DNA from: Bugula neritina
Taxonomy: Eukaryota; Animalia; Bryozoa
Direction of reading: 5' to 3'
NCBI GenBank assembly: GCA_964035545.1
Contig: OZ037772.1
Span: 13,080,818 to 13,144,817, forward strand
DNA: 64,000 nucleotides
Within the stretch, counting starts at the first letter, position 1; every line of letters begins with the position of its first letter. Under the pieces are notes generated by a model. That model had not been told where the DNA came from. It did not search any database and saw nothing but the letters and a program-made list of their open reading frames with translations. The translations under genes were made by a program, and so were the position numbers. Shown here in pieces: positions 45,536 to 53,019 of the stretch.

Positions 45536-48500
45536 ATGGCAGGTACATAGCAGTTACTTATTTCCTTTACATGCCATATAATATATGCATACCATATAAT
45601 AGTATGATTTTATTACACTGTAGTATGTTATTATTATACATATATTACAGTATATTACTTTATTACACTGTTCATTTTTCATTGGCTGTCCTTCGTGTCC
45701 GAAGATGACTTCCGGTGAATCATGGTCCTCCATTTACATCTGTCTTTGCTGAGAGATTGCCAGCTACCAATAGGGATCTTCAGGTCTTTTAGATTGCGTT
45801 TAACGGTATCTTTGAATCTCAGTCGCGGCCTGCCAACACCACGGGTGCCTTCTTTCAGTTGTGAATAGAGAATTTGTTTAGGTAATCTAGAGTTATCCAT
45901 TCGATGCACATGACCAGCCCATCTCAGGTTTTTTTGAATGAGTAGTTCATACATGCTGGGTAGATTTGCCTGTGCTAGAGTCTCCTCATTCGAGATGAAA
46001 TCCCACCACTTCACGTTCAAGATCTGGCGTAGATGTCTCATCATATAGGTGTTGAATTTGTGAGCGGCTATCCTGTATACAGGCCAGGCCTCCGCTCCAT
46101 AGAGCAGAGAGGACAGGACAATGGCTCTGTACACTGTACACTTGGTCTTGAATGACAGATCCCTATTGTACCACACTTTGGTCTTTAGTCTGCCGAAAGA
46201 GATTGAAGCATTGGACATCCTTGTATGAATCTCTTCATCCATCTTGTTGTTGCACATCACTGTAGACCCAAGATATTTAAACTTATTGACGTTGGCAAGG
46301 TCTTCATTATCTATGCAGATACTGTCACCACTGTCATGGGCTCCAGGTGCCGGTTGGTAGAGCGTTTCCGTTTTCTTGATATTGATTTTCAGACCAAAAG
46401 CTTTGGAAGCTCTGGCGAATCTGTCGACTAGTTCCTGTGCATCGCCATGGCTGTGTGCAACGAAGGCAGTGTCGTCAGCAAACATGAGTTCTCTAACCAA
46501 TACTTTCTGTGTTCTTGTTGTTGACTTGTATTGGTTCACATTGAACAGATCAGCTCCAGGTCTACTTTGAATCCAGACGCCTTTATCACAGTTTTCAAAT
46601 GCGTGCTGTAGAACAGCCGATAAGAAAATAGAGAATAGCGTTGGAGCCAACACACATCCTTGTTTCACACCATTGTTGACCTGGAACGGCTCAGATAACT
46701 CCTCCTTCAGCTTGACTGAAGCCTTCATGCCAGTATGGAGAGCGCTGATAAGATTGGTGAAGTGACTGGGAAAACCGAGTTTCTGTAAGATCTTCCACAG
46801 GGTCGCTCGATCAACAGTATCGAACGCTTTGGTAAAGTCAATGAAGACCATGTACAGGGGCATATTTTGCTCGATGCATTTTTCCTGTATCTGCTTCAGT
46901 GCAAATATCATATCTGCTGTTCCCCTTCCACTACGGAATCCACACTGAGTTTCGGGTAGGAAGTTTTCTGCGTATGATGTCAGTCTATTTAGAAGGACAC
47001 GAGCAAAAACTTTACCGGGAATTGAGAGCAGGGAGATACCTCTGTAGTTACCGCACAGCTTCCGATCACCTTTTTTGAAGATGGTTATAAGTTGGGCATC
47101 TTTCCAATCTTGAGGGACTACAGCAGTTTTCCATGCCTCCTTTATTATCTCATGGAGAGTACTTATTAGTTTGGGCCCTCCCCTTTTGATAACCTCCGGG
47201 TGAATGCCATCAGAGCCAGGTGATTTCCCTTCACTTAGCATCGAAGTTGCCTTGATGATCTCTTCAATATTTGGGCAATCGTCCATCCAGTCCTGAATGG
47301 GAGCTTGTCTCAGGTTCTCAATGATGTTGTCATCAATATCTGGAGTCTCGTTTAGTAGCTTGCTGAAATGCTCTGTCCATCTCGCTAGAAGATCTTGTTT
47401 TTCTGTCAGGAGTGTTGAGCTGTCACTGGCCAGGAGCTGGTCAGGATGACTCACTCTTGGACCCCAAACAGTTTTCATGCTTTGGTAAAAGCCTTTCATG
47501 TCGTTAGTGTCAGCAAACCGTTGCAGTTCAGCAGCTTTTGCCAACCACCAGTCGTTCTTGAGCTCCCTGCATCTTCCTGTGAGTTTTCTGCCAGCCATTC
47601 TAAGCTTTGACTTGTTCGAGCGAGTATTCCTGGTTAACATGTCTGCTCTGGCCTTGTTTCTCTTCTGGATGAGTTCTTGAAGCTCATCATTATTCTCGTC
47701 AAACCAGTCCTCATGCTTCCTGCTGACAGTGCCGAGGTGCACTTTTGACTCTGCATAAACTATCTCTTTGAATGCTCTCCACTTACTCTCCACGCCCTCT
47801 GGAGCAGAGTTCAGTTTCCCAGCAAGGGACTTTTCCAGTTCTTGTCTTACTTCCTCATTCTTAAGTCGAGAAACGTCCAGCTTCTGGCAAGGTGTTCTCC
47901 CTTTCTTCATTTTTCTCTTCACTCTGAGCTTAGCTTTTGACCTGATCATGATGTGGTCAGTACTGCAATTCGCCTCTCTCATCGCCCTTGTGTCTAGAAT
48001 GTCTGGTAGATCACGTTGTCGTGTGATAACAAAGTCGATGAGATGCCAGTTCTTGCTTCTCGGGTGCATCCAAGAAAACTTGTGAGCTGGTTTATGCTTG
48101 AAGAAGGTGTTGGTAATGCACAGTTGATGTTCACTACAGACTGAGATCAGAAGTTCACCATTGGAGTTCAGGTTTCCGCAGCCATACTTGCCTATCACAC
48201 CGGGCCAGGTTGAGTGATCTTGTCCAACCCTAGCATTGAAGTCCCCCATGAGTAAGATCTTATCAGCTGCTGGGACTGATCTTAGAGCCTGATTCAGTTG
48301 GTCATAGAATCTGTTGATGTTTTCTTGGCTGTTTGTCATCGTGGGAGCATAGACAGCTATCACAGTGCACCATCGCTCATCAGACAGAGGAACCCTGAGT
48401 GACATCAGTCTGTCGCTTATAGCCTTTGGCTCTTCGATTAGTCTCGAAACAAGTTCGTTCCTGATAGCAAGAGCCACGCCTGACTCACTGCGCTCAGATG

Positions 48501-51500
48501 CAGTTTTGCCACTCCAATAAATGGTGTAGCCTGACTCTTCACGAATGTTACCTGTATCTTTGAATCTGATTTCACTCAGTGCTGCAATGTCGATGCCATA
48601 CTTCTGTAGTTCAGATGAAATGATTGCACTTCTTCTCTCAGGTCTTTCTTTGTTCTCCCGGTCTAGCAATGTTCGTATGTTCCATGATGCAAGGTTGAGT
48701 TTAGAATTTTGGACCTTTTTATCCTGGGTGACGTCCTGCCAGTATGATTTCGTGTTCATTTTTCTTTTCATGATTCAATCGGATTATGCTGACAAGAAGT
48801 TTAAGGATACTTAGGGTTTTGTCAGTTGCTTAAGCACCCCTCTCCACTAAAGAAGTACGCTGTGCTGGCAAGGAGTGTCCAGGACGAGCACAGCAGTTCA
48901 GTAGTCGCAGTGACTGGCCGAGTAATTCGCCCTCTCAGAGTGTCACGTTTCTGGATGGATTGTTGTCTGGGTGATCAACCCATAGATCCTCATACTATTA
49001 GCCTGGGTGTATCTACACCCAGTTACCAGTGGTGACCGCTTGGAGGTTAGTATGAAGTCTTGACTGATGGGAACTTCTCTACAGTACATCATTGCCATCA
49101 GTCCTTGGATGCTGGGGTCCGTAGTGTAAACTGGTACAGCTCTTGGTTCCACCATCCACCACCACCATTACACTGTAGTATGTTATTATTATACATATAT
49201 TACAGTATATTACTTTATTTCACTGTAGTATGTTATTATTATACATATATTACAGTATATTACTTTATTACACTGTAGTATGTTATTATTATACATATAT
49301 TACAGTATATTACTTTATTACACTGTAGTATGTTATTATTATACATATATTACAGTATATTACTTTATTTCACTGTAGTATGTTATTATTATACATATAT
49401 TACAGTATATTACTTTATTACACTGTAGTATGTTATTATTATACATATATTACAGTATATTACTTTATTTCACTGTAGTATGTTATTATTATACATATAT
49501 TACAGTATATTACTTTATTACACTGTAGTATGTTATTATATAGTATACATATATTACAGTATATTACTTTATTACACTGTAGTATGTTATTATTATACAT
49601 ATATTACAGTATATTACTTTATTACAGCCATACAGTCTCTCCTCTTCCTTACTCTCCTCTACATACAGGTGAGACACAACGTCTCTTATTACTAACAATG
49701 AGTAAATAGAATCCAGTACATTAATACCGAATACTTCCATGGCCTGCTATCAGTTATTCTCCATGTAGTGTCCTTTATAATAGATAGTAAAATTTCATAA
49801 ATTTGGTTTATTCAGTTTGCTTACTGACGCTTTGCTGCCAATTTGTTCATAGCTGTTATAATATTATATATCAATTAGCAATTCAGCATTTACTGACATT
49901 GCCACACTGCGTCTGTGTTGTCACATATTCCAACAGCAATGGATCACCCAACCTTAGTGTACTCTTTAGCACTTGTTTGTCACTGTTTTTATCTTCAGGA
50001 CCATGTTAGTGCCACTAGGTGCATTGCAAGTTTTATTCTGCACTCAAAAATCATGACCAAGAAACTGAGGGCATTAGCTTTACACATGCCGACAAAAACA
50101 GTTAAAATACATTTAGCCAGGACATTATTTGTAAGAACCCTCAAGCGTCATGGTTCCATTCTCATCTACTCTCACATAATACCAGCTATTTTTTTACAAA
50201 CTCACGGTATAAAATGTTGCTTTCTTTATACTACTAACTCTCTCCTAGAAAGGGTGAAAGAGTTTCACGGTGTAAAAGGTGTGAACAGTGTGAATAAATA
50301 AACTATCTACATTAAACATACACCCTTATGGAACTTTCATATCAAACTAGGAGGGCAGTTACACTCCAGTTTATCAACACTGCAATAAATTAAAATATGG
50401 TGATGATGAAGTATGAGTCATATTAGACATGATTTACTTGGAGTGTTTCAACTCTTGGAAATAGTTTATTGCATAACGATAGAGAAGTGAGTAAGTTATT
50501 CGATATAATACCATGTGATACTGTGTAGCTATATAATATAGCCTTAGATGTTGTCTCTCTCACAGACTGTGGGGGGTGTGAAGGTGTCCGACTGTATAGC
50601 CAAGAAGTACTACTACTTTTCTACTGACCACACAGCCTGTGTTCTCAAGTCTGCAGGGGCCGACACTTCAGGTACTCTTTATGTCTCTCTACAGCTTAGG
50701 AATGGCGGGCTATTCTATATGTTCTGTGAGAGATGTGTACAACACTGCATAGTTACTACCCCTAGATGTGTACCACACTGCATAGTTACTACCCCTAGAT
50801 GTGTACCACACTGCATAGTTACTACCCCTAGGTGTGTACCACACTGTATAGTTACTACCCCTAGGTGTGTACCACACTGCATAGTTACTACCCCTAGATG
50901 TGTACCACACTGTATAGTTACTACCCCTAGATGTGTACCACACTGCATAGTTACTACCCCTTGTAGGCGTGTCCGAGGAGGATCGACAGCTGATAGTTGA
51001 TAAACACAACCAACTCAGAGCTCAAGAGACAGCTGCTGACATGCAGGAGATGGTAAGCTGTCTGTTACATAATAACTATGACTGACTGTGCCATGTTACT
51101 CCTTGTAAGACAACTCCTCTCCACATTGAAGGTGTGGGATGATGAAATAGCTGAGATAGCTCAGAGGTGGGCAGACAACTGCCTGTTTGAACATGACGCA
51201 ATGCAGAGGATTCCAGGCAGGTTTTCTCTGGGTCAGAACTTAGCTGCAGGATACACAACGTGGGACAGTGCCATTCAGGGGTGGTACGACGAGGTTAAGG
51301 ACTTTACTTATGGTTCTCAGGCTGCAAATGTGTTCAGTGAAGTCGGACACTACACCCAGGTGATGTGTTACACTATATTATATAGTATTATATTGTATAG
51401 TATTCTATTATATAGTGTTATATTGTATACTATTATATTGTAATATATTATATTACAATGTTTCAGCTGGTTTGGGCATCTTCAGCTAAGATAGGATGTG

Positions 51501-53019
51501 GCTACACGTACTGCTCTACACTCGCCAACTATCACAGATTGTACGTCTGCAACTACGGCCCCGCGTGAGTTCTAGCTACACCTCTAGCAACTAGGCTATG
51601 CTGCTAAGGCTATGTGATTAGCTCTCATAAAATAAACATTGTATGGTAACATTTATCTTGAAACTTGTCTAAATTATCTCAAACTGTTTTCTGTTCAATG
51701 TTTTGGCATTTCTTCTGCAGTGGGAATCTTGATTGGTCGAAGCCGTACCGTCAAGGCAGCAAGTGCGCTGACTGTCCGGACCAGTGTTCAGACGAGGGTC
51801 TCTGTGGTGAGTCAACTTCCTGTGTGGGCGTGTCTGCGGTTAGTCAGCTTCCTGTGTGGGCGTGTCTGCAGTTAGTCAACTTCCTGTGTGGGCGTGTCTG
51901 CAGCTAGTCAACTTCCTGTGTGGGCGTGTCTGCGGTTAGTCAACTTCCTGTGGTAAACTTACTGAACTCAGGTGTATTTCACAGACTGCGGAGGTAAAGT
52001 CTGTCAGAATGGAGGAACTCTCGACCTCAACACCTGTGAGTGCAGCTGCTCCCAGAACTGGCATCTCCTCCAACATGACTGTGCTTGTGAGTCCTTCCGG
52101 AATAGTCTTCTTTACTACTCTGTATACTCTACTCTTTATTACTCTGTATACTCTGTATACTCTGTGTACTCTGTGTACTCTGTGTACTCTGTGTACTCTG
52201 TGTACTCTGTGTACTCTGTGTACTCTGTGTACTCTGTGTACTCTGTGTACTCTGTGTACTCTGTATACTCTACTCTTTATTACTCTGTATACTCTACTCT
52301 GTATACTCTGTATACTCTGTATACTCTGTATACTCTACTCTGTATACTCTACTCTGTATACTCTACTCTGTATACTCTGTGTACTCTGTGTACTCTGTGT
52401 ACTCTGTGTACTCTGTGTACTCTGTGTACTCTGTGTACTCTGTGTACTCTGTGTACTCTGTGTACTCTGTGTACTCTGTGTACTCTACTCTGTATACTCT
52501 GTATACTCTACTCTGTATACTCTGTATACTCTACTCTATATACTCTGTATACTCTACTCTATACTACTCTACTCTACTCTGTCATAGGGATAGCATTGTT
52601 GTGGTACACTGTGTGTTTCAGTGAACTGCAGTGCTGTAAAGGAAAGCTCCAGCTGTGCCCCCGGAGGTTTTTATGATGGCAAATGTTTTGTATATAGTAA
52701 CGTACCTGACGAGTGTCCTAAAGCATGCAATATCTGCCCCTGTAAGTAATATACATACTGTAAGTTATATACGTACTGCAAGTTATATACAACTGTGAGT
52801 AATATTATGTACTGTAAGTTATATACGTATTGTAAGTAATATACGTATTGTAAGTTATATACGTACTGTAAGTTATATATATACTTGTAATTTACAGATT
52901 CCGATTATCTGGCAGATGAAGAGGAAATACCCGAGGAATCTGTTGGAGTTGTGTCCACGTCTAACTATCTCATCATCTTACTGAGTGCAGCAGCTGTGAG
53001 ACTCGTTAGACTAGCATGA
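45536..53019 (+). CDS. CAP3: CAP/SCP-EGF-ShKT protein with a hydrophobic C-terminal (GPI-like) tail. Exons 45536-45542, 49628-49668, 50566-50671, 50967-51052, 51132-51359, 51467-51564, 51721-51806, 51985-52086, 52622-52741, 52898-53019
   Basis: Signal peptide MAAIQSLLFLTLLYIQTVGG. Motifs NCLFEH, GQNLA, WYDE, VGHYTQLVWA, YVCNYGPAGN, CQNGG and CPKACNIC. Tail NYLIILLSAAAVRLVRLA*. AATAAA at 53186-53191. Confidence 0.9.
45679..48771 (-). CDS. RTE LINE ORF: APE-type endonuclease plus reverse transcriptase, 1030 aa, uninterrupted
   Basis: Endonuclease motifs SWNIRTL, ALSE, YAPT, GDFNA, IDFV, TDH. RT motifs NYRGISLL, DFTKAFD, GVKQGCVLAP, FADD, FKYLGS. RTE-like C-terminal LRWAGHVHRM and GRPRLRFKD. 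Confidence 0.97.
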   Translation of the reverse strand: MKRKMNTKSYWQDVTQDKKVQNSKLNLASWNIRTLLDRENKERPERRSAIISSELQKYGIDIAALSEIRFKDTGNIREESGYTIYWSGKTASERSESGVALAIRNELVSRLIEEPKAISDRLMSLRVPLSDERWCTVIAVYAPTMTNSQENINRFYDQLNQALRSVPAADKILLMGDFNARVGQDHSTWPGVIGKYGCGNLNSNGELLISVCSEHQLCITNTFFKHKPAHKFSWMHPRSKNWHLIDFVITRQRDLPDILDTRAMREANCSTDHIMIRSKAKLRVKRKMKKGRTPCQKLDVSRLKNEEVRQELEKSLAGKLNSAPEGVESKWRAFKEIVYAESKVHLGTVSRKHEDWFDENNDELQELIQKRNKARADMLTRNTRSNKSKLRMAGRKLTGRCRELKNDWWLAKAAELQRFADTNDMKGFYQSMKTVWGPRVSHPDQLLASDSSTLLTEKQDLLARWTEHFSKLLNETPDIDDNIIENLRQAPIQDWMDDCPNIEEIIKATSMLSEGKSPGSDGIHPEVIKRGGPKLISTLHEIIKEAWKTAVVPQDWKDAQLITIFKKGDRKLCGNYRGISLLSIPGKVFARVLLNRLTSYAENFLPETQCGFRSGRGTADMIFALKQIQEKCIEQNMPLYMVFIDFTKAFDTVDRATLWKILQKLGFPSHFTNLISALHTGMKASVKLKEELSEPFQVNNGVKQGCVLAPTLFSIFLSAVLQHAFENCDKGVWIQSRPGADLFNVNQYKSTTRTQKVLVRELMFADDTAFVAHSHGDAQELVDRFARASKAFGLKINIKKTETLYQPAPGAHDSGDSICIDNEDLANVNKFKYLGSTVMCNNKMDEEIHTRMSNASISFGRLKTKVWYNRDLSFKTKCTVYRAIVLSSLLYGAEAWPVYRIAAHKFNTYMMRHLRQILNVKWWDFISNEETLAQANLPSMYELLIQKNLRWAGHVHRMDNSRLPKQILYSQLKEGTRGVGRPRLRFKDTVKRNLKDLKIPIGSWQSLSKDRCKWRTMIHRKSSSDTKDSQ
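48988..49166 (-). ncRNA. HDV-like (double pseudoknot) self-cleaving ribozyme at the 5' end of the RTE element
   Basis: On the - strand: P1 GGUGGUG (49166-49160) with CACCACU (49034-49028), G1-U wobble. P2 CUUCAUACUA (49057-49048) with UAGUAUGAGG (48997-48988). P3 ACC/GGU, L3 UCCAAGC, P1.1 CC/GG. P4 CUGGGUGUA-GA-UACACCCAG. J4/2 GCUAA with catalytic C at 49001. Confidence 0.9.
49167..49627. repeat. 50-bp minisatellite (left remnant at 45605-45670) split by the LINE and ending at the CAP3 exon 2 acceptor
   Basis: Unit TACTTTATTACACTGTAGTATGTTATTATTATACATATATTACAGTATAT. Confidence 0.95.
50730..50962. repeat. 33-bp minisatellite resembling the downstream acceptor
   Basis: Units CTACCCCTAG|RTGTGT compared with the real CCCCTTGTAG|GCGTGT. 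Confidence 0.92.
51807..51950. repeat. 32-bp minisatellite starting at the donor
   Basis: Units begin GTTAGTCA; the real donor is GTGAGTCA. Confidence 0.9.
52115..52580. repeat. 9-bp minisatellite (TACTCTGTR)n
   Basis: Direct reading. Confidence 0.94.

Follow-up and report, generated by a model that had tools for sequence, protein, structure and literature searches.

A retrotransposon with a ribozyme-like 5' end in Bugula neritina

We analyzed a 64,000-nucleotide stretch of the genome of the bryozoan Bugula neritina (assembly GCA_964035545.1, contig OZ037772.1, positions 13,080,818 to 13,144,817 of the forward strand), hereafter the window. On its minus strand lies a young retrotransposon whose 5' end very probably encodes a functional ribozyme, predicted from its sequence to be self-cleaving and to belong to the hepatitis delta virus (HDV)-like class. 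The element has a 5' untranslated region (UTR) of 395 nt and a single open reading frame (ORF) for a protein with an N-terminal apurinic endonuclease-type (APE) domain and a reverse transcriptase (RT) domain. The ORF list held no further ORF of 80 or more amino acids on the element's strand inside the element, and there is no ORF1. Members of the RTE clade are about 3.2-3.5 kb long, have a very short 3' UTR that ends in short tandem repeats and not in long poly(A), and are flanked by target-site duplications (TSDs). The element described here shares these traits (one APE+RT ORF, 3,496 bp, an 8-nt 3' UTR, repeat tails and TSDs), and its layout fits that of an RTE-type non-long-terminal-repeat retrotransposon.

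The insertion target is an AT-rich satellite with a 50-bp unit (9 copies, 96% matches), which spans 49167-49626 and 45620-45670. Because the array continues on the element's far side, the element splits it. An earlier reading of this DNA from its letters alone (the sequence-only reading) had reported that the first base of the element, G1, directly abuts the TSD. This was indeed the case: CAGTGTAAT is found at 49175-49167 and again at 45670-45662. The features of the element and of the predicted ribozyme are collected in Table 1.

Table 1. Features of the retrotransposon and its predicted ribozyme (window coordinates).
Feature	Coordinates	Strand	Details and basis
Whole retrotransposon, 3,496 bp	45671..49166	-	Eight other copies align end to end
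Single ORF, 1030 aa, APE endonuclease + reverse transcriptase	45679..48771	-	Pfam Exo_endo_phos 1.3e-10, RVT_1 2.6e-35
3' UTR/tail AAAATGAA, 8 nt	45671..45678	-	
Upstream TSD copy CAGTGTAAT, 9 bp	49167..49175	-	Abuts G1
Downstream TSD copy CAGTGTAAT	45662..45670	-	
Predicted HDV-like ribozyme, complete, 179 nt, G1 = 49166	48988..49166	-	Sequence reading, descriptor, covariance model R1, Rfam drz-agam-1
P1 5' strand GGUGGUG	49160..49166	-	Predicted cleavage 5' of G at 49166; partner 49034-49028
P1 3' strand CACCACU (49034-49028), then P1.1 GG	49026..49034	-	Sequence reading, both alignments
J1/2 insertion, 102 nt	49058..49159	-	Hairpins at about 49158-49106 and about 49103-49062, AGG linker, then CAAGA
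P2 5' strand CUUCAUACUA	49048..49057	-	10 bp with 48997-48988, one G-U included
P2 3' strand UAGUAUGAGG	48988..48997	-	Sequence reading, both alignments
P3 ACC (49047-49045)/GGU (49037-49035) closing L3 UCCAAGC (49044-49038)	49035..49047	-	
P4 hairpin, 8 bp, loop AGAU	49003..49022	-	Minimum free energy fold
J4/2 GCUAA	48998..49002	-	Putative catalytic C at 49001

Anatomy of the predicted ribozyme

Read on the minus strand, the element's 5' end contains all helices of a nested double pseudoknot, in the order P1-J1/2-P2-P3-L3-P3'-P1'-P1.1-P4-J4/2-P2' (position p counted from G1 is window coordinate 49167-p). P1 has 7 bp, its G1-U wobble included, and P1.1 forms between the CC of L3 (49043-49042) and the GG that follows P1' (49027-49026). 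The spacing of J4/2, GCUAA, is that of the G-C-N-A-A in HDV J4/2. The sequence-only reading had described every one of these elements, and all lie where it had placed them: the 7-bp P1 with G1-U, the 10-bp P2, the ACC/GGU P3, L3 UCCAAGC, the CC-GG P1.1 and GCUAA with C49001 were the same when we read the sequence again. The 9 bp it had assigned to P4 had to be corrected. P4 has 8 bp and a 4-nt AGAU loop, and a ninth A-U pair would leave a loop of 2 nt. Its description of J1/2 as long and bearing stems of its own was borne out in the length of 102 nt and in the stem GACUGAUGG/CCAUCAGUC, which appears along with P2 and P4 in the unconstrained minimum free energy (MFE) fold; the pseudoknotted P1 is beyond folds of this kind.

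Specificity of the match

The site was assessed with a structural descriptor, a covariance model (CM) and Rfam. The generic HDV descriptor required a P3 of 3 bp, an L3 of 7 nt containing CC, a P1' of 7 bp with GG after it, a P2 at least 7 bp long with C-N-A-A before it, a stem for P4 and, no more than 200 nt away, the 5' strand of P1. Across the window, both strands included, it matched a single site in two P1 registers, with G1 at 49166 or 49163, which confirmed the earlier suggestion of a second register 3 nt downstream. No descriptor match was obtained in 60 dinucleotide-preserving shuffles of the window. The CM of the ribozyme core (R1) had one match in the window (48981-49064, E 1e-20) and detected at least 26 core sites in the 216-Mb genome.

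A narrow Rfam scan returned four weak matches, of which the best, and the sole ribozyme family, was drz-agam-1 (RF01787; 23.1 bits, E 0.011, 48989-49068). Its alignment assigns P2, P3, L3, P4 and J4/2 as the sequence-only reading did, and against this model the core of a related element reached 27 bits. When 10 kb were scanned permissively, with E up to 10, no HDV family was matched. SnoRNA-like Rfam matches within J1/2 (E 2.4-9.1) were judged to be chance. In the Infernal and descriptor search that had been suggested from the sequence, the descriptor site is unique in the window and the best Rfam match is HDV-like, and that match falls below the gathering score.

Genomic copies begin at the predicted scission site

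In the 216-Mb genome, the ribozyme is present in 12 copies with 99-100% identity to the one in the window. Ten of these have a full-length 5' end: seven start at G1, and three start at position 2 and have A instead of G1. The remaining two are truncated, at positions 15 and 20. Eight full-length copies compared end to end with the window copy were 98.3-99.5% identical to it. In the window copy, L070, L075 and L077, G1 is directly bordered by TSDs of 6-12 bp; the 3' tails of the other copies are variable, consisting of (TGAA)n, (ATG)n or A-rich sequence. When we looked for sequence shared among copies 5' of G1, none was found, the upstream flanks of all 12 copies being unrelated. We considered whether the A at position 1 is a heritable variant and rejected the idea: the three copies have no other diagnostic site in common and do not cluster. 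In two of the three the A is readable from the target sequence. These copies are junction variants, not a lineage.

The fold is conserved and covaries across lineages

The same genome harbors older subfamilies B to E (L013, L014, L033, L048-L052), making five with the window's family A. Homologues of the ORF are present in other public assemblies at 64-84% identity, and five of these external contigs include the 5' end (L018, L020, L022, L023 and L024). In all five, the homologous region opens with GGUGGUGG and the fold is kept; the sequences of P2, P4 and J1/2 differ among them. We built two alignments from the window, the subfamilies and the external relatives: one of 13 sequences made with MAFFT over the full pseudoknotted structure, and one of the ribozyme core with 19 CM-aligned sequences. 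L046, a decayed copy with L3 deleted, was excluded from alignments A1 and A2 and included in A3.

Standard pairs filled 89.8% of cells in the 13-sequence alignment, compared to 30-52% when the partners were slid, and 88.3% of cells were paired in the 19-sequence core; over both alignments, the slid-partner controls gave 25-52%. The 13 sequences have changes on both sides at nine pairs, and the observed covariation score was reached by none of 500 shuffles. The core has double changes at 11 pairs. Compensatory double changes were found at 8 of the 10 pairs of P2 (19-sequence core), at one pair of P3, the first, which goes from A-U to G-C or C-G, and in P4 at one pair (full-length alignment) or two (CM-aligned core). 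In P4 the outer four pairs are conserved, and lineages differ in the inner pair and in how long the helix is. P1.1 is paired in 88-92% of cells, with changes that are only one-sided and wobble-compatible. P1 is nearly invariant, with 97.7% of cells paired among the 13 sequences, and the partner of G1 is U in nine and C in three of the 12 sequences that have the position.

The columns that are invariant in the 13 sequences include U, C, C and G of L3 and the C of J4/2 (49001), which correspond to U20, C21, C22, G25 and C75 of HDV. Relatives L023 and L024 have UCCUCGC as L3, the L3 of genomic HDV. Because the fold and the core residues are kept, with compensatory changes, across subfamilies B to E and in relatives down to 64% ORF identity, they have been under long-term selection. 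In the distant RTE homologues L025, L026 and L027 (47-53% ORF identity), no HDV-like core was found by a relaxed descriptor, CM or Rfam; these elements may be truncated or may use something else.

A candidate self-cleaving RNA at the first base of the element

Four independent lines of evidence support the proposal, made first in the sequence-only reading, that an HDV-like ribozyme would cut at the first base of the element: the anatomy is complete and the invariant residues are those of the active site; the fold covaries across subfamilies and other assemblies; copies with unrelated flanks begin at G1, with TSDs abutting; and the best Rfam match, although sub-threshold, is HDV-like with the same helix assignment. 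In the mechanism we propose, the element would be transcribed within a longer RNA that starts upstream, and its first 179 nt would fold during transcription into the nested double pseudoknot (P1, P1.1, P2, P3 and P4). With catalysis by the J4/2 C (49001) and a bound divalent ion, the upstream nucleotide's 2'-OH would attack the phosphate that lies 5' of G1 (49166). All foreign upstream RNA would be removed, leaving a 5'-OH element RNA that starts with GGUGGUGG. This RNA would be translated to the APE+RT protein and then copied into DNA by target-primed reverse transcription at the nicked target. Cleavage at G1 would give full-length daughter copies that start at G1 and are flanked by TSDs, with one base occasionally lost at the 5' junction.

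Several observations weigh against this interpretation. P1 has no double compensatory change, only one-sided changes compatible with pairing (G-U to G-C, U-A to U-G), so conservation and the copy boundaries are what support this helix. The unconstrained MFE fold places the P1 5' strand in pairs with J1/2, indicating that a competing conformer exists. The descriptor was composed after the sequence was known and is supportive, not decisive; the alignments include decayed copies, and the CM-aligned one was fitted to the model, which favors structure. No Rfam family, RF00094 and RF01787 included, reached its gathering score, which for drz-agam-1 is 37 bits. This shortfall is plausibly due to the long J1/2 and to pseudoknots that the models cannot represent, and it bears on specific families (RF00094, RF01787 and others), not on the HDV-like structural class. 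Finally, in Logan assembled contigs from 18 runs, whose label as RNA is a guess, the element was covered to 49131-49151 and no contig extended into the flank; assembled contigs cannot show 5' ends.

The selected structure could instead be a conserved 5' UTR whose main job is not cleavage, such as one for cap-independent translation initiation or for binding the element's own protein, with transcription initiated at G1 from an internal promoter. A uniform G1 start would equally be expected from a precise transcription start site, covariation demonstrates a selected structure and not catalysis, and the HDV-like fold has been tied to translation initiation too (Ruminski 2011, by its title as cited in PMC3774820; PMC7761336). 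We nevertheless consider this unlikely. The residues that do not change are those of the catalytic core (U, C, C and G of L3 and C of J4/2), not merely ones that hold helices together, and in five or more lineages with differing P2, P4 and J1/2 the DNA copies start, to the base, at the predicted scission site. A role in translation and cleavage are, moreover, compatible.

An ancestral ribozyme that is inactive in the window family, with a fold that persists only through the youth of the copies, would accord with the 98-100% identity of family A copies to the window copy, which leaves little information on selection among themselves, and with the pairing of the P1 5' strand elsewhere in the MFE fold. 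However, the fold and core residues persist, with compensatory changes, in subfamilies B to E and in external relatives down to 64% ORF identity, and the window sequence has no core defect; we regard recent loss of activity as very improbable. Descriptors of the HDV-like class are loose, and false positives are known in large genomes, which raises the question of a chance likeness to the HDV fold. The lack of matches in the 60 window shuffles and the covariation in both alignments effectively refute this, and the site lies at the exact 5' end of copies, so that we give chance almost no credence. An HDV-like ribozyme that would cleave at G1 is the interpretation we retain.

The J1/2 insert and the choice of P1 register

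Folded alone by MFE, J1/2 has a two-hairpin layout in 12 of 13 lineages, L049 being the exception: hairpin 1, with the base UGG/CCA one nucleotide past P1, is followed by an AGG linker, hairpin 2 and CAAGA into P2. The stem sequences differ between lineages. Relative to shuffles, the stability of J1/2 ranged from Z -0.35 to -4.4 and was -2 or lower in 7 of the 13 lineages. Because the downstream P1 register needs bases 4-10 and hairpin 1 uses bases 9-11, the two compete, and hairpin 1 would favor the upstream register and cleavage at G1.

A register-selecting device might be formed jointly by the (GGU)n at the 5' end and the J1/2 with its conserved pair of hairpins, an idea that we put forward tentatively and hold to be doubtful. 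P1' CACCACU could pair with any GGUGGUG register, and hairpin 1 would block the downstream one, such that cleavage would retain the whole 5' end. Slippage in register or at cDNA completion would account both for the differing numbers of GGT with which copies begin (two units, three units or a long array) and for the complete invariance of P1 beside a freely covarying P2. If true, this would be a previously undescribed way in which a retrotransposon headed by a ribozyme preserves its 5' terminus. As for the copies themselves, in L048 (G000:C9, about 590434) a subfamily D copy is joined at its 5' end to a long (GGT)n array. In other copies of that subfamily the start consists of two or three GGT units, and the 5' repeat number varies by copy.

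Relation to known ribozymes and elements

The sequence-only reading had stated that R2, RTE and some other long interspersed nuclear elements (LINEs) carry HDV-like ribozymes, and the literature agrees (PMC3774820; PMC7761336, for R2 and other LINEs). Cleavage at the element's 5' junction is common to ribozymes of the R4, L1 and RTE clades, according to PMC3774820, which cites Ruminski et al. 2011. As described there, the RTE-clade HDV-like ribozymes resemble the one in the window in forming a double pseudoknot at the very 5' end of an APE+RT element with a single ORF and in a 5'-junction cut, predicted here, that trims upstream co-transcribed RNA. The host genome is different, and the present lineage is not named in the papers we read; the likeness is by description. 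In the window element, J1/2 is 102 nt long with two hairpins, and the (GGU)n at the 5' end gives two P1 registers.

R2 ribozymes (Eickbush and Eickbush 2010; PMC3774820) share the fold, the 5'-processing role (predicted here) and a large J1/2; in the silkmoth R2 ribozyme the J1/2 loops are 216-498 nt long and partly needed for activity (PMC3774820). Drosophila R2 is cut at its first base and has slightly variable 5' junctions (PMC3774820), and in the window family three of the ten full-length copies lack G1. R2 differs in having a restriction-like endonuclease and 28S ribosomal DNA-specific insertion, and the P1 of many R2 ribozymes makes use of 28S sequence. By contrast, the window element has an APE endonuclease, dispersed TSD-flanked insertions and a P1 that is wholly inside the element. 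The RTE element Perere-3 of Schistosoma mansoni, with a twister-variant ribozyme at its 5' end, shares the probable clade and the logic of the window element, a 5' self-cleaving RNA that trims an APE-type, TSD-making element (PMC8501958; cleavage is predicted in our case). Its ribozyme is of an unrelated class and each inserted copy makes a new P1 substrate (PMC8501958), whereas both P1 strands lie inside the window element.

Two HDV-like ribozymes are close in detail. In drz-agam-1 (RF01787, Anopheles gambiae), P2, P3, L3 (ACC-UCC..G.-GGU), P4 and J4/2 (CUAA) align position for position; the model expects a short J1/2, and the true P1 5' strand of the window, 102 nt upstream, stays unaligned. 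The genomic HDV ribozyme likewise has a 7-bp P1 with G1-U, a 7-nt L3 UCC..GC, a 2-bp P1.1 and J4/2 G-C-N-A-A. It differs in its 4-nt J1/2 and in serving rolling-circle replication of a circular RNA, not retrotransposon 5' processing.

RTE 5'-end HDV-like ribozymes and long J1/2 loops have thus already been published, and what is new here is the lineage, not the principle; the existing understanding of how such ribozymes or elements work is unchanged. The present data extend the HDV-like ribozymes that trim RTE-type retrotransposons by a well-documented lineage, which comprises five or more subfamilies in a single genome as well as relatives in other assemblies. They also document natural covariation in an HDV-like fold whose J1/2 is large and structured. 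A ribozyme with the predicted cleavage would explain the exact 5' ends of elements that have no sign of a promoter of their own. For annotation, the ribozyme core is a sharp marker of the family's full-length 5' ends.

Additional observations

Several individual copies have unusual junctions. In L004, an inverted element 5' end of at least 21 nt (about 1692-1712; G000:C3, upstream of G1 21377913) lies 5 bases from the full-length copy and may be a snap-back or template-switch product made at the end of cDNA synthesis. The L078/L010 copy (G000:C1, about 27909872) was inserted into (TGAA)n, the same repeat as in its own tail, a match that points to priming by 3'-end microhomology. In L052 (subfamily D, G000:C2:28036440-28036606), the first ~105 nt, comprising the P1 5' strand and J1/2, are inverted in place relative to the core, an arrangement that resembles twin-priming 5' inversions. 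CM core matches of about 81 bits at G000:C3:19530455-19530530 and G000:C4:19395342-19395417 were absent from the DNA-search results.

Downstream of the ribozyme, the 5' UTR contains the motif CCAG-Y-CACUGC (window 48919-48904, minus strand). The motif is kept in the distant RTE homologues L025 (about 1360-1380) and L026 (about 1355-1375), two of those in which no HDV-like core was found. The region around the element is repeat-rich, with adjoining tandem arrays at 50731-50961, 51801-51952, 52140-52575 and 52740-52879 that have periods of 33, 32, 9/18/23 and 18, respectively.

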